A DNA stretch of 64,000 nt from Iphione sp. A-MEVVRFRX5 (lineage: Eukaryota). The position numbers and the translations under genes are program-made. The stretch covers positions 89,404,001-89,468,000 of the forward strand of contig OZ320315.1 of NCBI GenBank assembly GCA_976226885.1, read 5' to 3'. The notes below the pieces were generated by a model. It had not been told where the DNA came from. It saw only the letters and a list, made by a program, of their open reading frames with translations, and did no database searches. Shown here piece by piece: positions 5,293 through 38,715 of this stretch. Numbering within the stretch: position 1 is the stretch's first letter; every line of letters begins with the position of its first letter.

Positions 5293-6156
5293 TATGTATG
5301 TTTTTGATAGCAGATAGCCTTTAAAAGTAAGAATATATATATGTATACATTAATGTACATGCATATGAAAATGAGTAGAACCTGTGTGAATTATTTTATC
5401 GTGAAAATATCTTCGAAAATAAGTAGAATTTGTGTAAAGTGTATGTTGGCACAAAAGTCTTGAAAAAGGAGTAGAACCTGTGAAAATCGCACCTCTGTTA
5501 ATGGAAATATTTACCAGTAAGCTATTACACAATGTCACAGACACACCTTTCCTGATTATCTGTATCTCTCTTTCATGTAAATATACTCCTATGATAAACA
5601 AAGAAATGTGGATCGTGAAAACCGGGATATGTTCCAGTCCCAAACACAGTCCATGTTTTGCCCTTAGAAACACAGGTTCCTGGAAGCTTCCCAGTTGACG
5701 AGCGTAGAAAGGCCAAAACTCAGAAACTTACGGAAAACATTCACAAAATACGGACATATGGAAATTATGCCACCAACTCCTTAGTAGTCCCTTCCTTTGC
5801 AAAAAAATACTGTGGATCAATGATACCAAATGACATAAGAAGAAGGTTTGTTCATCCGTAGAGAATCCCTATTGCAGATCAGTCGAGAGAGAGAAACGTA
5901 ACCTGGCCGGCCCGTGCCTCGAACCATCCCGCTCTCCTGCACAACAAAGCCACGGTTCTCTCATCAAGCACAGGACATACCTACCTGCATCTTTTCACAC
6001 CTGAACCTAATCCCCCACCACCACGCCCGAGCCCTACTGTCCAGTATTCAACTCCATTCGGACACAACGCCGGTGCACCTGTTTCCTCGACAGGGTGTCA
6101 GGTGGCGCTCTCGTCCACCGGATACAGTTATTGTATACCCGAATCACCCCCTCCCC

Positions 6157-6157
<1 letters not shown>

Positions 6158-6189
<32 letters not shown>
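6158..6189. repeat. (CA)n microsatellite
   Basis: Direct reading. Confidence 0.95.
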
Positions 6190-6190
<1 letters not shown>

Positions 6191-6479
6191 GTACCCTTTG
6201 CGGAAGTACATGTATAGCTTGGTGTTGTTGATGTTGAGACCCACGGATGTAAGTACCCTGTGTTCCTTGTGTGATCCCTCCCTCCCTCCCTCCCTCCTTC
6301 CCTTCCTCCCTCCTTCCCTCCCCACTCCTGTGTTCGTACCCTGATTCTATTCAGTACGCGTATTTAGGTCTGTTTCCTGCATATATCATAGATTCATTAC
6401 TCGGAAGAACAATATATGCTCTAGGTATCACATTCAGAAGATCTTACTCCATACATTATATTCGCAAGTACATATGGAC

Positions 6480-6582
6480 ATTGTGTGTTCTAGGAAATAC
6501 ATTGTACAATCAGGATATTTTACTCCCTGTTATTGTGTGTTCTAGGAAATACATTGTATGATCAGGATATATTACTCCCTGT
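6480..6582. repeat. 52-bp tandem duplication
   Basis: ATTGTGTGTTCTAGGAAATACATTGTA... at 6480 and 6532. Confidence 0.9.
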
Positions 6583-6871
6583 ATTTTCCCATTATTTTAG
6601 GGCTGGCTTTTCAGAGTGAAGGAAAGAGACACAAGGTGAGTCAATCCTAAAGGCACATGTACATGTACATGAATCCTGAAAACATTCCAGGAAATATCAT
6701 GCAATCAGGCACTTTTCCCTATACGTGCTATTGCGATCCGCTCCTCAAAGAATGCACCATTCTCCAATGCTGATATCCTTTTTCTAGAACCTTTTTTTAT
6801 TTGCCTGATCAGAATACATGTAATTATAATAGCAAAATAATGATGGCATAATGATAATACTAATGATTATG

Positions 6872-7195
6872 CCCACCCACCCCCAAAAATAGGTATGTTT
6901 CTGGTAAGGAACAGCCAAAAACCTAGGTAGGGGGTATCTTTTATCTTTAATTTTTTCCCACTGTTCCTCTGGTTTTCAATAATAATAAAGACAACATGAA
7001 TTTTTACCAATTTTTTGCTGAATTTCCATGGATTTAGTGGTTTTCTACTGAATTTATAAAAAAACATGTGCTGTGAAAACACATATCTAAGGAAACTTAG
7101 CCTTGGAAGCTCTTTGGGGCCAAAATTTTTTAGGTAGGGTGAGGTTTTACTAGGTAGGGGTGGTTGACCAGAAAGACCACTATCTTTTTGCCTTA
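6872..7195. mobile_element. Degenerate non-autonomous inverted-repeat element (GTTTCYGGTAA-type ends)
   Basis: GTTTCTGGTAA near the left end versus TGACCAGAAAG near the right; resembles the ends at 15258 and 51786. Confidence 0.35.
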
Positions 7196-9942
7196 CATCG
7201 ACCTTTATTGGAATTCCTTGTTGCAAATAAATCAAAAAACTAATTTCTTACCACATGTAGATGAATCCAATATGCACCTCCAGTTGGTGAAACAGTTTCA
7301 ATATCGAAATGGGGGATCCCTCTACATTTAGAAGATGCTTGGCAGTGTTTTCAGTAGCAAGGGATACGTTGGGGCCTAACAATCGTCTGCGCTTGTGCAA
7401 GTAAACCGTACGAGACAGGCCGCTCCTTAATATGCACCGCTGACCAGAAACCGTACGTAGCAATTGTTTGAAAATTGAACATGACACGAAGGTGGGGGAT
7501 TTGCTGAACATGATCCATCCCCTACCCTCCTCCAACCGTGTTTTAGTTTCTCCAACCAAAATGTGTTGCGGCGAAACGACACTTGATGTTCAGGGACCAT
7601 ATTTGGAGAATACGTATCTCGAGGCTTGTCTTACAACAAGACGTTGTTAGACACCTCAGGAGAGTAAACTAAGTATTTTAAGTAAGTATTTTTTATCCTT
7701 TGTATCTGCTATGTGAACATGTACAGTCAACTATCACCGACCATCAGCACTTTGTTAGAGCTGGTATAAGCCGGTTTACGTGCAATGGTGGTTATTAAAT
7801 GCGTTCTGTAAAAAATAATATTAAGATTTGTTGCATCTATCATGGTGGGGTATAAAACCCTTCGTCGGTTATCAGGTTGTTGGTTAGTGACTTCCAACTG
7901 TAGAGAGGTCTCTTTCATATGTTCATATATTCTCATATATGCGCAGAGTAACCAGGTATCTGGTCACACCTAGAACCATACAACGTTTGCGCAGTGGCCA
8001 TCTGAGATGTTGCAGTAACACCACTGATCACACCTTAGACAATGAGTCTTCCTACAATGCTTTGAGCTTGGACATCTGAGATGTCGCTGGGACGCCTCTG
8101 CTTGCATTGTTGCACTGGATTTATACAGATATGACACAAAGGCGTGTGGTTGTAGGCTTATTTGGCCGTATTATGGTCTGGCTGCATTGTGGTATTAATA
8201 AATATGGTTTAATAGACATGTAGTGGAGCAATTCTATTCTGAGATCCTTTGGTCGCATTAACGGTTTGGGTTGCTGTACTGTATGGTCGCATCTCGGCAT
8301 TCGACTGCACATGAATCATAACATAACATCATTCACTCGATGTGACAGTTTTCCCTTGTAAATAAGATGTTTTAGGATTTCAAATGACTTAGTGAGCAAC
8401 AGAAGCCACTTGTACAAATGATTTTTGGTAAGTGCTCAGTGCTTTGATTTTTGGTCAGTAGAACTTTGCTTTACAGGAACGTGTTTGTGCCAGAATGCAG
8501 ATGGTACGTACCATCAACGATGAACAGTGAACATCAGGCCTGGGTTTAAGGTTTACCCTCAAGTGAGAAACTCTTCAAAACTATGTACATCTAAAACTCC
8601 CCTTCATACTCGTACACGAGTTCTGCAGGAATAAATGTCGCCGGCTTGAAAAGCCTCTAGTTCTTACTCAAGTCCTGCCATATACACGTATGTCCTATAC
8701 ACAAATGTCCTACACTCCTCTGATCACCCTCCACCCATCAACTCAATGCCCTATCTGCTGAATGCCTGTCACTCTGTCGGGGCTGTGGGATATTAGGATG
8801 ATAATAGTCGGGAGCTGACCCAGTCAGTCACTCTGGCCCGACCCAACATTATTATACAGATCTCCGTTGACCATCGATTATTTAGACGAGCATGTTCGGC
8901 AAGTGATGAGCGTAATCTCCTTAGAGGGCATATTGAAATGTATTACCGGCTGCGGAGTTCTTATCGGAGGCCGCATATCATTTCGTTATCAAATGTTTGT
9001 GGCGCCACAGACGCCTTGTGAGCAGGCTTCGTACTACTTATGTACACGGCCGGCTTGTAAATGTTGAATAACAGAAGGGGATGGGCGGTAATGGGGCACA
9101 TTTCTCAGGCGCACTTAAACGAAATGGAAAGACGGACACAGAAGGAAAAAAATACGGATAGGAGCATTACGGAGTGTAATAATAGAAATCCCCCCTCCCA
9201 AGAAAATAAAAAGTAATTGTTTCCAAACTAACGATCTCCTATGCAATCAGTAAGGGAGCCCCAACTTCTTGCAGCACGAGAAATTGTCCTTAGAGAGTTT
9301 TAATTGGTTTTGCCCTAAGTTACCCGTCTCAACGACGTAGATATGTATCTGATCGTATGCGCGATATGCCGTTTGATGTTCCATCCAGTGGCTGTTTTAC
9401 CTCACGCATGATTCCACGTATCTGATAAACCGCACCTTTTAGAGCGATTGCAACACGTGAAATTTAAATGCGCATGCAGCTCCCAGGGTTATCGTCTCCT
9501 ATATATTGCATTATGTGCACTGTATTACAAAACGGCTAATTCAATGGGAAACTAGAGCATAGGGGCTTCCAATGCAAAGGGCGCCTGCTTTTTATAACGG
9601 GAAGTGTCCTTTCTCGGCATCTGTCATACAGATGGGTTTAACTTATTTCCGTTTCGTCGTCATTTTAATGAGATTAGTACGAGATTCGGATTATTCCAAT
9701 TAAGCCATCCTGAAAGAAGAGGAATTTTCCCTTCAATTGATCAAACTCATCCAGTGTATACAACACACACATGCATGCACACACACATATACACATAGGG
9801 CATCAGTTCTCCGTGGGTAAAAAGGAGAGGCCTGCTAGTCTTTAGCATTGTTAACGAAGTGACATTGGTACATTTCACACCGGGCCGGTGAACTTTGAAT
9901 GGGAAGGTCAAGGAACTGCCCCCCCCCCCACCCCGCAACACA

Positions 9943-10136
9943 CATTACAACAAACAACCGCGTACCAGTGGAGACATTTATTACGAGAACACATAGGTAA
10001 ATAAACATTATCGATCAGTTCATCAACAGGTGTGTATTGTCAAGGTGTGTGTGCGCGGAGTGGCGAGCGTGAGCGGCGAGGGGTGAACATGTTTATCTGA
10101 GGTGTGTGTATGTGTGTGTGTGTCAGTGATTGCGCC
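9943..10136 (-). repeat. E1 repeat B2 (194 bp)
   Basis: Reads identical to 10265-10458; contains AATAAA on the minus strand (9977-9982). Confidence 0.97.
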
Positions 10137-10174
10137 CTACCGCGTAAAGCTTGTTGCTAGTTGGGTGGGTGGGC

Positions 10175-10268
10175 GGTAATCCAAACTGTCCGGCGGTTGA
10201 CCGCGAACTGAGTCACTGTTCGCGGCAGTGTAATGAAACCACGTGACCAACCGTCACGTGGGCCCATT
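10175..10268 (-). repeat. E1 repeat A2 (94 bp)
   Basis: Reads identical to 14691-14784. Confidence 0.97.
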
Positions 10269-10458
10269 ACAACAAACAACCGCGTACCAGTGGAGACATT
10301 TATTACGAGAACACATAGGTAAATAAACATTATCGATCAGTTCATCAACAGGTGTGTATTGTCAAGGTGTGTGTGCGCGGAGTGGCGAGCGTGAGCGGCG
10401 AGGGGTGAACATGTTTATCTGAGGTGTGTGTATGTGTGTGTGTGTCAGTGATTGCGCC
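10265..10458 (-). repeat. E1 repeat B1 (194 bp); shares CATT (10265-10268) with A2
   Basis: Reads identical to 9943-10136. Confidence 0.97.
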
Positions 10459-10470
10459 AAGGCAGTCTGT

Positions 10471-11364
10471 CTATCGTCTTTTAGTAAGATACCTCGCTGC
10501 TGCGCTCGAGCGCCAGTCCCCGCGAGCGACTATCTGCTGCCTCGGGACCCCTTGTGCCTGTGCGTGCCTGGCGCCCCCGTGCCGCAGCCCGTGAAGGGTG
10601 TGGCTATCGGGCGCCAGGCCCGCGGCCCCGACCGCGCGGCGCCAGGCCGGGCGCGCGTAGGACAGCGGAATGGGCGTCTGGGTGCCCTCGAAACACACAT
10701 AGGGCTGCTGGTGACTGGCTGACGGGTTCGCCTCAACCATGTCGTGGTGCGCGCGGAGTGGGCAGAGATCGTCGCCCGTGGCGCGGACCGTGATCTGCCG
10801 GGGGGTAGTGAAGAATTGCCGGGACTTAGACCACACAACGGTGAGGCGTAGCTCGTGCGGCCCGTCGGCGACGTGGGACCTCAGGAGCTGGCGGTACCTG
10901 TCGAAAGTGCTCACGTTCTGGGGGAGCAGGTTAGATTGGCGCAGCAGGGATGCGAACAGGATCAGGACCGCCGCGACCAGCGGGCGGGCCTGCGGGTCAC
11001 GCCTGAGGTGTGGAAGTATCAGGCGCAGCTTCTGTTCGGTGATAGGCAGGCGAGCTGTTGGCGCGGGTCTCGGAGTCATCTTAAGTGCTTGCAGCGCGTT
11101 GCGGACAAGAGGGGACCGCCAGGTGTCGACCGGTCTACCTTTATCCGCGAAGTGCGCCGTAAGGGCGCTGATGGTATTCGCCACACTCGCCGGGGTCGTC
11201 GTGTACGCCCTCTGCTCGATGAACGCGCAGAGGTGCTGGGGATCTGGCCTCCGATAGTCAACCCCGTACTTGGCGGAGAATGAAATGTAGGCGCGCAGGG
11301 CTGATGCCCTGTTCTTGAATGTACCTGGCCTCTTCGCGTGGCGTTGCCGTTCTTCTGCCGCCAC
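10471..11364 (-). CDS. E1 tyrosine recombinase (frame open from 11406; no AUG until about codon 96)
   Basis: Catalytic set SLLRQSN (R), WSKS (K), HGLRHGG (HxxR), RGDWRS (W), ARYL (Y). The track start is GTG. Confidence 0.95.
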   Translation of the reverse strand: MAAEERQRHAKRPGTFKNRASALRAYISFSAKYGVDYRRPDPQHLCAFIEQRAYTTTPASVANTISALTAHFADKGRPVDTWRSPLVRNALQALKMTPRPAPTARLPITEQKLRLILPHLRRDPQARPLVAAVLILFASLLRQSNLLPQNVSTFDRYRQLLRSHVADGPHELRLTVVWSKSRQFFTTPRQITVRATGDDLCPLRAHHDMVEANPSASHQQPYVCFEGTQTPIPLSYARPAWRRAVGAAGLAPDSHTLHGLRHGGARHAQAQGVPRQQIVARGDWRSSAAARYLTKRR

Positions 11365-11393
11365 CAGGAGGTCATTGTAGGCCGGGTCTGAAA

Positions 11394-13538
11394 TTATAGG
11401 TGGTATTTATAATCGTATGCCCAAGGTGGAACGTTGACGACTCGTAGGTTTTCGCTGTTGATGTATGACTGTGCTACGTTGTGGTGAGGGACTGACCGCG
11501 ACGCTCGGCTAAGTGCGTCGGGGATGATCATCTGGGCCCCGGGACGGTGCTCGGGTACCAGGAACGCGTGGTGGTGCTCAACATGGTACCAGATGGCTCT
11601 GGCGCAGGCTGCCAGTACGGGGTCCCGTGCGCGACCTGACGCTAGGACTTCGACTGTGGCGGCGTTGTCGCAGAGAAGCCTTACACGTTGGCCCACGTCA
11701 TCGTCTGTGATGAGGAGGCGGGCCGCGGCGAGGCAGTTTATTGCTTCCAATTGCGAAATGTGGTGACCCTCTGCGACGTCTTGTGGCCATTCGAAGCTGT
11801 AGCATGCGACGCCATCATGCGCCCCGGCACCATACAAGCAGGCGTCCGCTGCGATCGTCTTGTGGGGCGTGGCAGGCGGGAAGAATGATATGCCGTTGTG
11901 CGTCTCGGAGAAGTCGCGCAGCCAGCGCAGGTCCGCCCTAAAGTCTTGGTCGACCTCGATAAAGTCGGTGCCCTCTCGTAGCTTGCTCAGGATTCGCGCC
12001 ATAAACAACCTGGCGGCAGGAATCGCCTTCGCGATGTGGTTGATCTTGCCGACTATCGACTGCACTTGGCGCTTGGTCAGTTGCTGGTGGGTCATGGTGT
12101 CGCTGAACAATACTCTGTACTCGGCGAGCTTCGCTCGGGGTATCGCCAGGGTGGCTGTGATCGTGTCCACTCGTATGCCCAGCCAGGTGATTGCTGTTGC
12201 CGGGCCTTGGATCTTCTGTGTGGCGATTGTCAAGCCGAGGTCCTGGAGGAACGCAATGACGTGCTCGACTTGCTTCTTGGCCTGCGCGGCGTCGGGGGCC
12301 ACCAGCACGAGGTCATCCAAGTACATCAGTGCGTCAATGTGGTTCGTGTGTAGCTGGCGCAGGATGAACTCCGCCGCCTTCTGCATGACGGCGGCGCTCA
12401 AGCGGGCGCCAAACGGGAGGGCCGTGTCGATGTAGAATTTCCCGTCGACCTTCAGGCACAGCAGCGGCCAGTCAGCGGGGCACACTGAAAAGTGGCGGTA
12501 TGCCCGCTTGAGGTCAACCACCGCCATGCAGCAGGGAGGGTCGTAGTCTTGGATTCTTCGAACTAGGTCGGTGACTGTCGGGAGTGTGTGCGGGCGCTCT
12601 GCTCCATATATAACGCCCTTCTGCACGTACGCGTTGACTGCTCGGCCAGGCGGGTATGATAGGTCTACGATGACGCGTCGCGAGCCGTCTGCTTTGGGGC
12701 GTGTCATCAGCGGGGCAACCATGCACCACTCGTGGAACGGGGGCTGATCGTAGGGTCCCATAATTGCTCCGAGCCTAATCTCCTCTCTGATGTATTCGGC
12801 TATGGCTCGGGGGTGCGCCCGTGCCGAGGGGTGGTTAGTTGTGTCGGTACGTGAAACAGGGGGACCGGCGTAATGGATGGGAAAACCGTACCTTATGCCA
12901 TCCAGGATCAGCGTGTCATCGTCGTGGCCGGTCGCCGCATTGTCCCAGGCGCGATAGATTAAGGAGGTGTTGAGTGCCAGTCTGGCACCGAGGGCGTTGG
13001 GGTGGCCTAGCCTGGCCACGGTCCGGTAGGTGTTTTCGGCTCGCTGACCGCAGGCCGCTATCATGCGCGGCCATGTCGCTGCTCTGTGTTGTGCTAGTCT
13101 TGCGGAGAACCATGGCTGAGCTTCGCCCTCGGTTGGGTTCGACAGGTGCGTCGCGTTGGTGTATTGAGGGGCAGGGGAGGGTAGCGGTGAGCCGTAATCC
13201 GCGTAATCCTCTCCTGTCCCGCCGCACTCGCTGTCCTTGAGACCATTGTCTTTGGCCGGTGAGCTGGCGTGAGCGTTGTCGGGGGGCATTTGTAGGTCGT
13301 CGTCTTGGTCTGTTACATCATGGGCGGGCAAAGGCGTCTCGGGGGGCTGCCCGCTCGTTAATCCCTCGAGTGCGCGTTTTTTGGCTCGGTCCTTTCGTGG
13401 GTCTTCTCGCGTTGGTCTCTCTTGGGTCTCTCCTTGTTGTCTGGGCGTGAGGTCGTGGCCATTCTCGCCTTTCGTGCGCATTCGGTTGCTGAGTGCTGAC
13501 ATTCTCGGTTGCCTACGCCCATCCAGCACACTGCACAT
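11394..13538 (-). CDS. E1 pol: reverse transcriptase + RNase H (-1 frame relative to gag)
   Basis: VVDLKRAYRHF, ALPFG, YLDDL; RNase H AADAC/QLEAIN/LCDNA/PDALSR; pre-RT PNALGARL...GIRYGFPIHY domain typical of DIRS-order pol. Confidence 0.96.
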   Translation of the reverse strand: MCSVLDGRRQPRMSALSNRMRTKGENGHDLTPRQQGETQERPTREDPRKDRAKKRALEGLTSGQPPETPLPAHDVTDQDDDLQMPPDNAHASSPAKDNGLKDSECGGTGEDYADYGSPLPSPAPQYTNATHLSNPTEGEAQPWFSARLAQHRAATWPRMIAACGQRAENTYRTVARLGHPNALGARLALNTSLIYRAWDNAATGHDDDTLILDGIRYGFPIHYAGPPVSRTDTTNHPSARAHPRAIAEYIREEIRLGAIMGPYDQPPFHEWCMVAPLMTRPKADGSRRVIVDLSYPPGRAVNAYVQKGVIYGAERPHTLPTVTDLVRRIQDYDPPCCMAVVDLKRAYRHFSVCPADWPLLCLKVDGKFYIDTALPFGARLSAAVMQKAAEFILRQLHTNHIDALMYLDDLVLVAPDAAQAKKQVEHVIAFLQDLGLTIATQKIQGPATAITWLGIRVDTITATLAIPRAKLAEYRVLFSDTMTHQQLTKRQVQSIVGKINHIAKAIPAARLFMARILSKLREGTDFIEVDQDFRADLRWLRDFSETHNGISFFPPATPHKTIAADACLYGAGAHDGVACYSFEWPQDVAEGHHISQLEAINCLAAARLLITDDDVGQRVRLLCDNAATVEVLASGRARDPVLAACARAIWYHVEHHHAFLVPEHRPGAQMIIPDALSRASRSVPHHNVAQSYINSENLRVVNVPPWAYDYKYHL

Positions 13539-14671
13539 CGATGGTGAAACGTGGTACCTCCTTCACGATGCTTGTGCGCCTCTGGGCAAGTGGCCATGTT
13601 GTAGGCCAGGCAAGGGACCTCCGGGGGAACTGTCTCTTTCTGGCCTTTGCAGAGGGCGAGTTGTGTCCGCATCTGACTAATTACTGCCTCGTCCTTCCAC
13701 CTCAATGTTCCCTGATTAATCTGGTGGATAACTGTTAGCGACCAGCGCCTAACGTTTTTCCACCTGTGTGTCAGGGAATCCTGTAGTAGCTCTTCCGCGT
13801 GGCAGAGCTGGTACCAGAGCGTCGTCCTCGGGGGGCCCGACAGCCGAATCATCGCGATCAGTCCAATGGCATGTTCAATGGGAGACAAATCGTCAGGGGA
13901 CTCCCTATCTTTAATCTCTTCTGCGAGGTCGAATAGCGTCATGTACGGTTTCCAGAAGGGCACCATTTTCTCTTTTACCGGATCATACACTTGCTTACCT
14001 CGCGTTCGGCGAAATGAAGTGGTAGTCTCGGCCTGCATCGCTTTGTCGACGTACGCCATTGATTCGCGTGGGATGCGTCTGCGTCGGCGGGTGGAGGTTT
14101 CGTCCTCCGATGAGGACGTCCATTCGGAGAGGTCCGTGGAGTCGTCCTCGGACAGGGAGGGGGACGTGGTCGTGTGCCTGCGCCTTACGCGCCGAGAGCG
14201 TTTGTGTACTGCATGAACCGGGCTGCGGCGCTTCACTACTACCTTCTGCTTCGTGCGTCGTCTGCGGCCGGCGTTCTCCCTTTCGCGGCGAGTCTGGTCG
14301 CGCTGTCGGGTTTTCTTCGGTGTCTCGACGTCCCCTGGGTCTTCCGGGCCTTGTGGCACTGGATCGGTGTTGTTGTTTCCCTGCGGTGCTGGCTGGGGCT
14401 GCGGATCCTGCGGCGGAGCTGGATCTTGGTTTCCTTTGGGCTTCGGAGTGTCGTTCTTGCTCTTGCTCCTGCGGCGATCCTTCTTCTGGTGGAGGGCCAG
14501 GAGGATCTCGATGCCCGTCTCCAATCATGCGATCCGTTCCTCTAGCTGGGCGGCCGGTGCCGGGTCTCCGGGGGCCGGGTTCTCCGGCTGAGAACCGCCT
14601 TGGTCGCCGTTACCGCTGGGCCCCGGTACGGGGTCCTCGGGATTTCCTGGATTAGCGTTGTCCATAGACAT
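13358..14671 (-). CDS. E1 gag-like ORF1, interrupted by one in-frame TGA at 14525-14527
   Basis: ATG at 14671 gives MSMDNANPGNPEDP...QLEERIA*LETGIEILL in frame with track ORF 13358..14524 (TTG start); C-terminal Cys/His finger CLAYNMATC...HHRCAVC...HSATEC. Confidence 0.88.
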
Positions 14672-14690
14672 AGCGAGGGCAGGCCTGCAA

Positions 14691-14784
14691 GGTAATCCAA
14701 ACTGTCCGGCGGTTGACCGCGAACTGAGTCACTGTTCGCGGCAGTGTAATGAAACCACGTGACCAACCGTCACGTGGGCCCATT
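14691..14784 (-). repeat. E1 repeat A1 (5' end of element)
   Basis: Reads identical to 10175-10268. Confidence 0.97.
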
Positions 14785-14805: not shown

Positions 14806-14954
14806 NNNNNNNNNNNNNNNNNNNNNNNNNNNNNNNNNNNNNNNNNNNNNNNNNNNNNNNNNNNNNNNNNNNNNNNNNNNNNNNNNNNNNNNNNNNNNNN
14901 NNNNNNNNNNNNNNNNNNNNNNNNNNNNNNNNNNNNNNNNNNNNNNNNNNNNNN
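14806..14954. other. Assembly gap (149 N)
   Basis: Run of N starting 21 bp outside the E1 end. Confidence 1.
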
Positions 14955-34675: not shown

Positions 34676-35653
34676 CAACCCCAAAGAAGAAGAAAAAACT
34701 GAATCAAAATTAAGTTTATCCTCCAGAGATGGGGAGAGATAGCAAAACACAGCGTCACTCCTCCACCCACCTCTCTCTTTGATCACATGAAGAGGAACAC
34801 CTAACCTAGCCATATGAGAAGCACCTCCTCGTCTGAGCGAATGAGAAGTTAGTCTCCCCTCAACACCAGCTACCATACACAACCTCTTCAACTCCTTATT
34901 GAACCATGAATACTCCAAAAAACACAACTTTCCATCTTCAATAAAGGAGAAAATTGGGAGATTTTTCGACACTCTTACAAATGAAAAAAGTAGACCCAAC
35001 CAATGAACTAGGCAAAAAATTCTACTACTACTTGAAGACACAACTATATCCCTAGGGGATTCACCAAACTGATCAGTCTTCGACCTCCGAATATGAATAA
35101 TCACACGGTCAGCAAAAATCTCAATATCACTCCTCTTCAGCCCTGAATCATCCATAAATTGATTCTTCCTCAACAAACTACGGAAGCCAAATAGAATAGC
35201 ACACCAAAACACCAACTGCCTCACCTTAGAGAGGTCCAAAACGCCATAAATCTTAACCAAATCCGAGATGGAAAACCCTTTGGATTTCAAACTCTTGCCC
35301 ATATCAATCCTCTTCAACCCACTAATCATCCATTTTATATTAAAATCCTGAACATCTGGAGGGGAGAGAAAACGTTTCCTATGCTCAAACACCAGACCAC
35401 TCAAATAGTTTGAAACCGAGCTTGGGCGCATAACCTGAGATAAGTAAGCGCAATATAATCTCAATTGGAACTGACTACATGGATAAGCTGAGAAACAATA
35501 CTTCTTGCAGAAAGACAAATAAACTTCTTCTTGTCTCTTCCTCGTCCTCACGGTATTGTCAGAGTACGCCATCTCCCTCAACATGACCATTCTCGATATC
35601 AGGCTCCCAACCGGATCTGTAAGACAAGAGCACCTCCTTACAACAAGCTTCAT
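34670..35653 (-). CDS. E2 tyrosine recombinase
   Basis: SLLRKNQ (R), RSKTDQ (K), SHSLRRGGA (HxxR), RGGWRS (W), FCYL (Y); overlaps pol by 95 nt. Confidence 0.96.
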   Translation of the reverse strand: MKLVVRRCSCLTDPVGSLISRMVMLREMAYSDNTVRTRKRQEEVYLSFCKKYCFSAYPCSQFQLRLYCAYLSQVMRPSSVSNYLSGLVFEHRKRFLSPPDVQDFNIKWMISGLKRIDMGKSLKSKGFSISDLVKIYGVLDLSKVRQLVFWCAILFGFRSLLRKNQFMDDSGLKRSDIEIFADRVIIHIRRSKTDQFGESPRDIVVSSSSSRIFCLVHWLGLLFSFVRVSKNLPIFSFIEDGKLCFLEYSWFNKELKRLCMVAGVEGRLTSHSLRRGGASHMARLGVPLHVIKERGGWRSDAVFCYLSPSLEDKLNFDSVFSSSLGLA

Positions 35654-37544
35654 TCACCCACGACGTCCACCTCTCATCGTCAACAAAGAACTTATCATCA
35701 CGCCTCGACAAGACATCAGCTACCACGTTATCTTTCGTATTAATATACTCTGACGTGATTCTAATGTTGTAAATGGTGCAAACCCAAAAAATCTCCTTCA
35801 ACCACCAGAGACACATCTTGTTAGAGCTTCTTCCTGATCTCAGCATATACAACACCTGAGTATTGTCCACCATAAACAACACATTGCTATTCCTCCACAA
35901 GTCCTTCCACCTCTTCAGAGCAACAACCACCGGCCAAAGTTCGTAAACATTGATATTCCGCTCAATCAGGTCCATCAATGGTCTACTCTCACAATGGCTA
36001 CATCCAAAAACTTTCAAGGCACCAGACCAATCACCCAAAAACCAGTCGTTCTTATATGAACCACCAAAACCCTTAAACGAGGAATCGGTATAACAGACAT
36101 GCTCAACCAAACCTGGGTCAATAATTTTACCGACCCCATTGAACAATTTAGAGAACACCAACCACCAGTTCAGATCATCTAAGACCAAATCGCTCACTCC
36201 AACCTTTTTGTTGTTTTTGGGCAAGGACTCTACAAAATCATACATACTTCTACAAAAGGTGCGCCCGCCCAGAATGATTGTGGCGCAATGAGATAGGAAA
36301 CCAGCAATCTTCTCACCTTCTTTCCTGCAAATCTTTTTTGAAGAAGTAACCTTGGTCAACATATCCCTCATTTTATCTAACTTTCCTTCAGGGAGCCTCA
36401 TAGTCATCTTTGAACTGTCTATCTCAATGCCCAAGAAAATACATTTCCTGCTTGGTTCAGTTACTTTCTTCCAAGAAACGTCAAAGCCCAAAGACTCAAT
36501 AACACCTGTGAGAATCCTCCTGTTGCTCAGACACGAATCATACGATTCACCACACACAATGAAATCATCAAGATAATTCACTACCCTACTATCCGCTAAC
36601 TGAGCATATTCCTGCACAACAAAATTGGATAACTGGGTAAAGATGTAAGGCGCGCATTTCAAACCAAAGGTTAATGAGTTACTCACGAAGAACCTCCTAC
36701 GGCCATCCAGATACCACGAAAAACCCTGATATTTTCTGCAGTCTTCTCTAACACTCACTGACCTATAAGCATTACTTATGTCCACCACACTGAGAAAGTC
36801 ACCCTCTTTTAGAAACGTACAAACGTCACCAACTGATCTATATGAGAAGTCTTCATATAATCCCTCCATGAAGTAATTAATAGAAACTCCTACAGGCATT
36901 GAACAATCAGTTATTGGCCTCAGAGAGCCATCACTTTTTGGAACCCCCCCCATAGCATGCACACATTGGGGGACATCTTCCACTTCACTCACAAAACCCT
37001 GTTTGATTTCCTTCGATATTTTCTCCGACATCTCTGACAAAAAGGGCTCAACCTCGATAGACTTGTAATTCCTGCAATAGTACTTGCCTTCGAAGTTATC
37101 ATTAACAATCTGAAAACCGCTACAAACGCCATTCCAGATAAAAACACGCCTGCTGGGATCCATAAGTCCAAAACAACACCCTCTAAAAAATCTACAAGGC
37201 CTAAGTTTGGACATAACACCCCCAATAATGTGTTTACAATCACAGTTACCATCAAGACATGTCTTATAAATTCTGATAACGTTATTACTGTTAAACATCA
37301 CATATAACAGTTTGTCATCATCAACTATGGGTGATCCTGCGGGTACACCCCCTTCAATGTCAATCAACAACCATGCATTTCCAACATTATTTTCACAATG
37401 GTAAGCATATAAGAACATGTTAGCATCCTCAACTAAAAGATTTTTAGCATCGCTATACAAAGGTTCATCAAGCCTTTCTAAGCTAGGGAAAAACAACACG
37501 TCCAAGCCTACTGCGTCATTGTAACTTTGTTGTACGTTACATAG
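35559..37544 (-). CDS. E2 pol: RT + RNase H, in the same frame as gag and directly after its TGA
   Basis: VVDISNAYRSV, LTFG, YLDDF; RNase H YTDSS/VYELWP/MVDNT/VADVLSR; frame open from 37544; the track start is TTG and the first AUG is at 37418. Confidence 0.95.
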   Translation of the reverse strand, partial: LCNVQQSYNDAVGLDVLFFPSLERLDEPLYSDAKNLLVEDANMFLYAYHCENNVGNAWLLIDIEGGVPAGSPIVDDDKLLYVMFNSNNVIRIYKTCLDGNCDCKHIIGGVMSKLRPCRFFRGCCFGLMDPSRRVFIWNGVCSGFQIVNDNFEGKYYCRNYKSIEVEPFLSEMSEKISKEIKQGFVSEVEDVPQCVHAMGGVPKSDGSLRPITDCSMPVGVSINYFMEGLYEDFSYRSVGDVCTFLKEGDFLSVVDISNAYRSVSVREDCRKYQGFSWYLDGRRRFFVSNSLTFGLKCAPYIFTQLSNFVVQEYAQLADSRVVNYLDDFIVCGESYDSCLSNRRILTGVIESLGFDVSWKKVTEPSRKCIFLGIEIDSSKMTMRLPEGKLDKMRDMLTKVTSSKKICRKEGEKIAGFLSHCATIILGGRTFCRSMYDFVESLPKNNKKVGVSDLVLDDLNWWLVFSKLFNGVGKIIDPGLVEHVCYTDSSFKGFGGSYKNDWFLGDWSGALKVFGCSHCESRPLMDLIERNINVYELWPVVVALKRWKDLWRNSNVLFMVDNTQVLYMLRSGRSSNKMCLWWLKEIFWVCTIYNIRITSEYINTKDNVVADVLSRRDDKFFVDDERWTSWVNEACCKEVLLSYRSGWEPDIENGHVEGDGVL

Positions 37545-38495
37545 TCATTTCTTACCACCCTTTGAGTCCTTGGATTTATCTGCGTTGTTGACGTTCGCTG
37601 GGCACTCATAGGCTTTATGATCTGAACTTCCACACACAAGACACGCATGTTTAAAATTACAACCACTATCATGGCAAGTGCCATTGTTAAACCTATAGCA
37701 CACCTTATCTGAACGCTTGAAAACATCGCTATGTTTCTTACTCTTCGGCCGTTGACTACCACTCTTTTGCGTATTACCGCTCAGCATCATATCAAAACAA
37801 AAATGCGAACGAATAAGCTCGTCGTCACCGAACTTAAAGGCACTTGTACCTTTCTTTTCTGCTCTTTTCCTCATGTCCTTATCATAGTCAATGAAGGAGC
37901 TGTCCTTGTACACATTTTTGATACGTTTCTCCAGGAGGAATATCAAATGGTCCAAGTAGCCAGAAATGTCATGGCCCTTTTTCAGGTGTCGCTGCACCAA
38001 ACGCACGGAACCATACATCAACTGGTCAAAACTGTCAACACTTTTAACCTTGGCAGCCGCACGCACGTTAAACAATTTCTTCTTACCCTTGGACCTCCTC
38101 TTTTTCTGCTTATCATCATCATCCGAGTCTGAATAGCTCAAAGAAGACACGTCGTCCTGGCTTGTTGACATATCGCCACCACGGTCCTTGGAAACTAGGC
38201 CACTTCCGCCCGCATCCTTTGACAACGTAGAATTGACGCCACCATTAGCCAGAAGCAGAGATATCATGTCCTCGAGTTTGCCCATTCGTTGAGACAAACC
38301 ACCATTACCATTACCATTGTCATCTGCACCATTTGACACATCAACCATCTTCGATGAATCAGTCACAATTTCTGGAAAATCAGAAAACACACGAGACTCC
38401 ACCGAAGCACCACTACCATTTTCCACGGATAATCTGCATTTCTTGCCTACAGGAGCAGAATGTTTCCTGTTACATTTCGAACAATGTCTACCCAT
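37545..38495 (-). CDS. E2 gag-like ORF1
   Basis: N-terminal CSKCNRKH...C knuckle; C-terminal CYRFNNGTC...CNFKHACLVCGSSDH...C finger; likely ATG at 38495 (frame open to 38618 inside A1). Confidence 0.9.
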   Translation of the reverse strand: MGRHCSKCNRKHSAPVGKKCRLSVENGSGASVESRVFSDFPEIVTDSSKMVDVSNGADDNGNGNGGLSQRMGKLEDMISLLLANGGVNSTLSKDAGGSGLVSKDRGGDMSTSQDDVSSLSYSDSDDDDKQKKRRSKGKKKLFNVRAAAKVKSVDSFDQLMYGSVRLVQRHLKKGHDISGYLDHLIFLLEKRIKNVYKDSSFIDYDKDMRKRAEKKGTSAFKFGDDELIRSHFCFDMMLSGNTQKSGSQRPKSKKHSDVFKRSDKVCYRFNNGTCHDSGCNFKHACLVCGSSDHKAYECPANVNNADKSKDSKGGKK

Positions 38496-38567
38496 GTTGA
38501 AAGGCGAAATTACTGCCAGAAATCCGTTGGAATAGACAAGCACCTCGGAACCAGGTCCGTACCATTC

Positions 38568-38715
38568 AAAATTTTCAATCTGAATGACGGTTGTTATCCC
38601 TAGCATTCTATAGTACACACCTGTTACTTAGGACGTCACCCAGTGACTAAGGTGACGCTACCACACATCTGTAGTTGCTATATCAATACCCAAATAAATG
38701 CCTTATTTGGTATAT
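38568..38715 (-). repeat. E2 repeat A1 (5' end of element)
   Basis: Reads identical to 34477-34624. Confidence 0.97.

Follow-up and report, generated by a model that had tools for sequence, protein, structure and literature searches.

Splicing and Frame Use in Retroelements

Subgenomic splicing is well known in retroviruses. For example, avian leukosis virus and Rous sarcoma virus form a spliced subgenomic env mRNA, in which the gag AUG and first gag codons are joined to env. Spliced subgenomic RNAs are also described for the long terminal repeat (LTR) retrotransposons BARE (PMC3735527) and Arabidopsis Ty1/copia (PMC5580714). Ngaro elements have been described with three open reading frames (ORFs), according to the passages on element structure in PMC2632668 and PMC8547959, and the frame of the tyrosine recombinase (YR) ORF relative to the one for reverse transcriptase (RT) and RNase H is variable, according to the corresponding passages of PMC3783388. 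Here, we discuss E1, a Ngaro-type tyrosine-recombinase retrotransposon of recent origin whose ORFs are gag, RT/RNase H (pol), and YR, and which is located at 9943-14784 (4.86 kb) on the minus strand of a stretch of 64,000 nucleotides (nt) from Iphione sp. A-MEVVRFRX5. We refer to this whole stretch as the window, and positions are those of the window unless another locus is named. The E1 recombinase is probably translated from a subgenomic RNA that arises by splicing, and would then be fused to the N-terminal part of Gag (GagN-YR).

The scheme proposed for E1 has much in common with retroviral env expression. In both, one transcript serves as the genome and as the gag/pol mRNA, the donor lies in or near gag and the acceptor just past pol, and the downstream ORF borrows the gag start; a suboptimal acceptor would hold most of the RNA unspliced. 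The two differ in the nature of the downstream gene, which in E1 encodes a recombinase (an integration enzyme) in place of an envelope protein, and in the length of the borrowed part, as about 140-225 Gag codons would be fused instead of about 6. Moreover, E1 belongs to the YR retrotransposons and has split direct repeats, unlike an LTR element.

The likeness to BARE and Ty1/copia is that splicing of the transcript sets the ratio of the element proteins, at least in the portions of the two studies drawn on here (PMC3735527, PMC5580714). In those elements pol is spliced out to obtain more Gag, whereas in E1 the C-terminal part of gag would be removed together with pol, yielding a new fusion and a start for an AUG-less ORF. 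The described Ngaro elements share with E1 the order gag, RT/RNase H, YR, the split direct repeats, and the variable YR frame. However, the passages of PMC3783388, PMC8547959, and PMC2632668 considered here present separate ORFs and are silent on splicing or YR translation, whereas a spliced fusion is predicted for E1. More generally, neither natural splicing nor a Gag-YR fusion is described for DIRS, Ngaro, PAT, or VIPER elements in the full-text literature searched, as far as its text was accessible; subscription-journal reviews lay outside this search, and an earlier mention is possible.

For comparison, we used a second element of the same window, E2 (34400-38715, minus strand), whose three ORFs are intact, together with relatives from Logan contigs (L001, L003, L035), JGI metagenomes (L004, L005), ENA assemblies (L028-L031, L036), and NCBI genomes (L032-L034). 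Their identity to E1 is 22-40% in pol and 25-34% in YR. The distant metagenome loci L006/L007, L022, L025, and L027 were kept out of the counts, being too diverged or having an AUG of their own, with donors that could not be judged. A scan of viral contigs with the YR alignment turned up no relative.

A Predicted Splice from gag to the Recombinase

A first-pass annotation of the window had proposed that a GT/AG pair joins gag to the recombinase frame of E1, and both sites are confirmed by direct reading of the minus strand. The predicted 5' splice site, CGAG/GTAAGC (13993-14002; slashes mark splice boundaries), is in phase 1 and ends exon 1 at 13999, which is the first G of the Gly-Lys codon pair GGT-AAG in gag; a Ser/acidic tract followed by a basic tract lies upstream, as had been claimed. 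The predicted 3' splice site is CCACCTATAATTTCAG (11388-11403), followed by AC CCG, so that exon 2 starts at 11387, again in phase 1. The pol stop TAA occupies 11396-11394, and the acceptor AG (11389-11388) ends 6 nt past it.

Between the two sites lies a predicted intron of 2611 nt (11388-13998, minus strand) that spans the C-terminal core of gag, the overlap of gag with pol, and the complete RT/RNase H ORF. The coding part of exon 1 (13999-14671, minus strand) comprises 224 codons plus 1 nt, and its product has a Pro-rich N-terminus and includes a short helix motif as well as the Ser/acidic and Arg/Lys-rich tracts. Exon 2 (10471-11387, minus strand) holds 305 codons plus a stop and encodes the tyrosine recombinase, with no AUG in its first 103 codons. 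The joined coding sequence measures 1590 nt (530 codons), and the frame runs on across the junction, where the codon G/AC gives Asp and the protein reads ...RTR-D-PAYNDLL, in agreement with the intron length and junction proposed before.

The same annotation expected an in-frame protein of about 529 amino acids (aa). Continuity over the junction holds, but the frame is not open: an in-frame TGA (14525-14527, minus strand) interrupts codon 49 of both gag and the predicted fusion. Neither full-length Gag nor the 529-aa fusion can therefore be produced from E1 as assembled. The stop sits within the short helical motif, which E2 and L001 have at the matching place, and it points either to a defective copy that is nonetheless young or to a wrong base in the assembly.

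Scored with a rough matrix of the metazoan donor consensus, donor 13999 ranks first among the 201 GT sites on the E1 sense strand. It is also the sole xGT-AAK codon pair across the three ORFs of E1.

In E2, a corresponding predicted pair spans 35616-38087 on the minus strand, with the donor AAGG/GTAAGA (exon end at 38087) and the acceptor CTTGTCTTACAG/AT (exon start at 35616). Both sites are in phase 1, and the junction reads Asp-Pro, as in E1.

Conservation of the Donor

Ten elements include gag, namely E1, E2, L001, L035, L028, L029, L036, L032, L033, and L034. All ten (10/10) have a phase-1 GTAAG or GTAAT directly upstream of the Gag core, and in eight of the ten this donor falls on a Gly-Lys or Gly-Asn codon pair. 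The core itself is marked by an aromatic-x-Pro motif (with the aromatic residue and Pro adjacent in four elements), followed by a DEL...G block. Gly-Lys donors are found in E1 (CGA G/GTAAGC, gag TR/GK), E2 (AAG G/GTAAGA, SK/GK), L036 (GAG G/GTAAGA, EE/GK), and L029 (GAT G/GTAAGC, TD/GK). The donors of L001 (AAA G/GTAATT, HK/GN) and L035 (CGA G/GTAATC, HR/GN) lie at Gly-Asn, and that of L028 (CGC A/GTAAGT) at KR/SK. L032 and L033 have annotated Gly-Lys donors of the same position class as E1. The nearest relative of the E1 gag is that of L036; the two have the block GK..DP.VKE...KPYM in common, with the donor at the same Gly-Lys.

The background of xGT-AAK codon pairs is 40 per 12,359 codons (nine of the ten elements, L036 left out), and the pair is unique within gag in E1, L028, L029, and L033. 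In E1 and L029, the donor outscores every other GT of the entire element.

A pattern of this kind might also be a by-product of amino acid conservation and codon usage that is picked up by predictors, with no splicing taking place in vivo. Part of the signal could indeed originate at the protein level, given the frequent Asp or Gly at the junction and the Gly-Lys pair at the donor. However, the region of gag around the donor is of low complexity and otherwise unalignable, yet it keeps the phase-1 GTAAG or GTAAT. The acceptor bears on this explanation as well.

Conservation of the Acceptor

On the recombinase side, a phase-1 YAG (an NYA/G codon boundary) stands 21-23 residues before a conserved Thr in all ten elements first tested. 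Elsewhere in the same ORFs such boundaries number 89 of 2920 (0.0305 per codon boundary), giving for the first ten a nominal P of ~3e-11, which overstates independence, since the elements are related, and to that extent counts against our reading. Extending the comparison to 15 elements, a phase-1 YAG is found 21-26 residues before the Thr in every one of them (15/15). Of the phase-1 sites, 14 fall in the histogram peak at 21-23 residues and the two RefSeq-annotated cases are at 25 and 26; nine of the 15 elements have the YAG at exactly the E1 distance of 23 residues. Phases 0 and 2 give no YAG peak in the same 15 elements.

The residue before the junction differs among the elements (Ser, Thr, Leu, Pro, or Ala), yet it is encoded by NCA or TTA throughout. 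As the NYA codon is kept though the residue varies, the constraint acts on the nucleotides and not on the amino acids. This speaks against a mere by-product of protein conservation, as do the pyrimidine-rich stretch upstream of the acceptor and the stop that nine of the 15 elements have a mere 2-7 codons ahead of the junction, where their YR frame opens. We therefore hold an origin from protein conservation and codon usage to be improbable, and regard the predicted gag-to-YR splice pair as what it appears to be from the comparison, i.e., a real and conserved feature.

In L003 (925-940 of that locus), the pol stop TAG itself supplies the AG for the predicted acceptor, AATTTTTAG/AT CCT.

Entry into the Recombinase Frame

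The YR frame of E1 opens at 11406, behind a TAA at 11409-11407, exactly where the first-pass annotation had put it. The first AUG was placed too early, at about codon 96: counted from the frame opening, it is codon 110 (ATG 11079), which corresponds to codon 104 past the junction.

In an alignment of E1, E2, L001, and L003, an invariant Asp-Pro opens the conserved block exactly at the junction. E1 has a stop six codons upstream of this Asp-Pro with no AUG in between, and its family-conserved residues, from the junction Asp-Pro on, thus begin upstream of any AUG. Not a single Met precedes the conserved Thr ~23 residues downstream of the junction in E1, L004, and L030. In the remaining elements the Met positions are scattered and none is conserved.

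One could imagine that translation simply starts within the YR frame, at a non-AUG codon or at the first AUG (11079), to give a free recombinase, the splice pair being coincidental. CTG and GTG codons are indeed present in frame at 11367 and 11364, as had been pointed out, and non-AUG initiation is known in eukaryotes. Nonetheless, the conserved Asp-Pro and the block that follows lie upstream of the CTG and GTG, and a start at 11079 would lose ~100 conserved residues of the N-terminal domain. On the unspliced RNA, the gag and pol ORFs also precede these two codons, which are over 3 kb away from the 5' end, and the conserved donor and acceptor would be left unexplained. We consider such a start very improbable.

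A somewhat better, though still unlikely, candidate is coupling to pol on the unspliced RNA, by a -1 frameshift in the overlap, by readthrough, or by termination-reinitiation, with the GT and AG unused. The YR frame of E1 is at -1 relative to pol and overlaps it by four codons (12 nt), a relation shared by L003 and L004 as far as the -1 frame is concerned. L001 and L028 have YR in the frame of pol, separated from it by a single stop, and in L036 pol and YR form one continuous ORF. The passages of PMC3783388 on ORF arrangement likewise place the YR ORF in frame with, or frameshifted to, RT-RNase H across Ngaro groups. However, no X_XXY_YYZ heptamer is present in the pol/YR overlap of E1 (11406-11397), and with E2 at +1, the frame relation takes all three values (-1, +1, and 0) among relatives, so that a single conserved recoding device does not fit. 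The phase-1 YAG and the gag donor, in contrast, are conserved throughout, and at the acceptor it is the NYA/G nucleotides that are kept while the encoded residue changes.

L036 deserves separate mention. At 6001-7761 of that locus, the C-terminus of pol and YR form a continuous 586-aa ORF without a stop, and both the pyrimidine tract with its CAG acceptor and the Gly-Lys donor in gag are retained. Two expression routes may coexist in this element.

Two-Exon Gene Models from Amphioxus and Acorn Worm

A profile search of 1.84 billion proteins yielded 480-670-aa proteins with a C-terminal YR domain, which are NCBI RefSeq models from Branchiostoma belcheri, B. floridae, B. lanceolatum, hybrids, and the acorn worm Glandiceps talaboti. 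Three of them (XP_078682739, XP_019639177, and XP_077986280) were mapped to their loci by an exhaustive GT/AG search, with one exact solution each. Exon 1 takes up 145-173 codons from the start of a gag ORF of 332-390 aa. The donors (AAAG/GTAAGC, AAAG/GTAAGG, and ACAG/GTAATG) are all in phase 1 and at Gly-Lys or Gly-Asn, and the introns of 2833-3291 nt contain what remains of gag together with a pol ORF of 613-784 aa. The acceptors, each a pyrimidine tract with CAG in phase 1, lie directly past pol, and exon 2 is the YR. The unspliced 390-aa Gag has an annotation of its own (P0203).

These models agree with the E1 prediction in their two-exon GagN-YR layout, their phase-1 GTAAG or GTAAT donors, and an acceptor directly past pol. 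They differ from E1 in that they come from other species and families, with at most 37% identity among them, and carry host-gene labels. RefSeq names them "uncharacterized protein LOC..." or "integrase/recombinase xerD homolog", and several such loci occur per genome (L032, L033, L034). We read the Branchiostoma and Glandiceps GagN-YR models as products of retrotransposons that have been entered as host genes.

Additional models are available for B. floridae, B. lanceolatum, and hybrids, and one bears the name "isoform X1". The NCBI pipeline uses RNA-seq, and the naming as "isoform X1" suggests transcript support. We count the RefSeq models as independent annotation and not as RNA proof.

Balance of the Evidence

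Critically speaking, several points weigh against a spliced GagN-YR. The splice is predicted from DNA sequence and gene models, the RefSeq XP models are automatic, and gene predictors read the same sequence signals as we did. Searches among Logan-derived (possibly transcript) proteins found none with the fused architecture. In E1 itself, exon 1 is interrupted by the in-frame TGA, and the pyrimidine tract of the acceptor is weak (10/16). A crude acceptor score did not set the E1 acceptor apart or single out the proposed acceptors in general, and positional conservation was therefore relied on instead.

There is also an element of choice in the comparison. Both sites were picked by eye in six of the ten elements (E1, E2, L001, L035, L028, and L029), as was the donor in L036. 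L028 has three phase-0 GT sites that outscore its chosen donor, and the L029 acceptor is ambiguous, as it could lie either 23 or 30 residues ahead of the anchor Thr. Finally, with an AUG just past the acceptor in L001 and the continuous pol-YR ORF of L036, other routes may coexist with splicing.

The proposal that the recombinase is expressed from a spliced subgenomic RNA as GagN-YR, as put forward in the first-pass annotation, is nonetheless strongly supported on two sides, by the comparative conservation and by the RefSeq two-exon models; the TGA in exon 1 of E1 is among the points against it. It stands as a prediction that we consider likely to be correct.

Structure and Classification of E1

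The class assignment of E1 rests on its repeats and its ORFs. Self-BLAST places the 5' terminal repeat A1 at 14691-14784 and the 3' split direct repeats at 10265-10458 (B1), 10175-10268 (A2), and 9943-10136 (B2), all on the minus strand. A1 and A2 are identical over 94/94 positions, and B1 and B2 over 194/194. This A1...B1-A2-B2 split-direct-repeat layout identifies E1 as a Ngaro-type YR retrotransposon, and the 100% identity of the terminal repeats indicates that the element is young. The edge of A1 is 22 nt from an N gap (14806-14954), which lies outside E1. The G+C content of E1 is 0.59-0.60 (in the two 2-kb bins that it fills) versus ~0.35-0.46 in window bins outside. For E2 the value is ~0.40 and near that of the host, so that the E1 and E2 families differ strongly in composition within one genome.

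The ORFs are arranged in the order gag, pol, YR. The gag ORF runs from ATG 14671 to its stop (13358-14671, minus strand); its core is homologous to the gag of L001 and L036, and Cys/His motifs are present in its C-terminal part. The pol ORF (11394-13538, minus strand) has 714 aa counted from the first ATG, with a Pfam RVT_1 match at residues 281-457 (E = 1.2e-17) and 40% identity to the pol of L001. RNase H was not detected separately by Pfam in E1 pol. The YR frame is open from 11406 to 10471 (minus strand) and carries the catalytic residues R...K...HxxR...W...Y, which are invariant as R156, K194, H272, R275, W298, and Y306 of the YR alignment. The Pfam family Phage_integrase matches the E1 YR with 24 bits (below the cut-off of 27.1) and the E2 YR with 37 bits. 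No DIRS-type methyltransferase, protease, or DDE integrase was seen in E1, where Pfam on pol gave RVT_1 only, which is weak evidence of absence.

Gag and pol overlap by 181 nt, and an A_AAA_AAC heptamer lies within this overlap at 13374-13368 (minus strand), in the gag frame and 10 nt ahead of the gag stop. The heptamer is compatible with a -1 frameshift to Gag-Pol. In addition, an alternative-frame ORF of 177 aa is found at 13995-14528 (minus strand), of which the ATG overlaps the gag TGA and the end is a TAA within the donor GTAAG. It is probably meaningless, and splicing would lead it into an early stop.

The Gag N-Terminus in the Predicted Fusion

The exon 1 peptide of E1 is rich in charged residues and proline (Lys plus Arg 19%, Asp plus Glu 15%, Pro 12%) and has several Arg/Lys runs. 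For an amphioxus fusion (P0126), an AlphaFold model from an 11-sequence alignment (mean predicted local distance difference test score 68) has exon 1 disordered save for a long helix at residues 41-79. A disordered linker leads up to the junction at about residue 145, and the recombinase is folded confidently. The Cys/His-rich C-terminal part of Gag is intronic and would be absent from the predicted fusion. Pfam searches on the fusion proteins and Gag gave nothing useful. The first-pass annotation had supposed that the fusion gains the Gag coiled coil and a basic tract resembling a nuclear localization signal; both features are putative, the modelled helix and the Arg/Lys runs bearing on them in part. 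The Gag N-terminus may serve to bring the recombinase into the nucleus, to assemblies of Gag, or to both.

At its extreme N-terminus, the Gag of E2 has a CxxCx3Hx7C motif (38436-38483, minus strand), which recurs with equal spacing in the Gag of L028 (~370-420 of that locus). Being in exon 1, this motif would enter the GagN-YR fusion of E2; E1-type Gags are without it.

Proposed Expression Route

In short, the expression of E1 may be pictured as follows. The unspliced RNA would give Gag and Gag-Pol and double as the replication template. A minority of the RNA would be spliced from the donor at 13999 (Gly-Lys in gag) to the acceptor at 11387, 6 nt past the pol stop, with the weak acceptor presumably keeping most of the RNA unspliced, as in retroviruses. 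The spliced mRNA would use the gag AUG, and a disordered, helix-containing, Arg/Lys-rich GagN would thereby be joined in phase 1 to the AUG-less recombinase. Owing to the TGA in exon 1, this particular copy of E1 would depend on proteins that other copies supply in trans.

A wider proposal is that splicing of the gag N-terminus to the recombinase is a general and ancient expression and delivery route of animal Ngaro-type elements, as the Gag-YR counterpart of Gag-Pol-integrase. The spliced RNA keeps both terminal repeats and could be reverse-transcribed and inserted, thus seeding recombinase-only elements with split direct repeats. A retro-copied spliced RNA would be expected to measure ~2.2 kb for E1 and ~1.85 kb for E2. 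We put this wider proposal forward tentatively, as something we would be slightly inclined to bet against.

Significance for YR Retrotransposons

The literature found, as far as its text could be consulted, does not explain how a YR ORF that follows pol, often lacks an AUG, and varies in frame is translated. A conserved splice from gag to YR would answer this question. If it is true, YR retrotransposons would be a third major group of retroelements using subgenomic splicing, and their recombinase would act as part of a new fusion protein, GagN plus recombinase, of which the N-terminal part may direct the enzyme to the nucleus or to complexes of Gag with RNA or cDNA. The "uncharacterized protein" and "xerD homolog" entries of amphioxus and hemichordates in RefSeq would then be retrotransposon products. 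Annotation pipelines for transposable elements that call three separate ORFs would, moreover, miss the actual recombinase protein.

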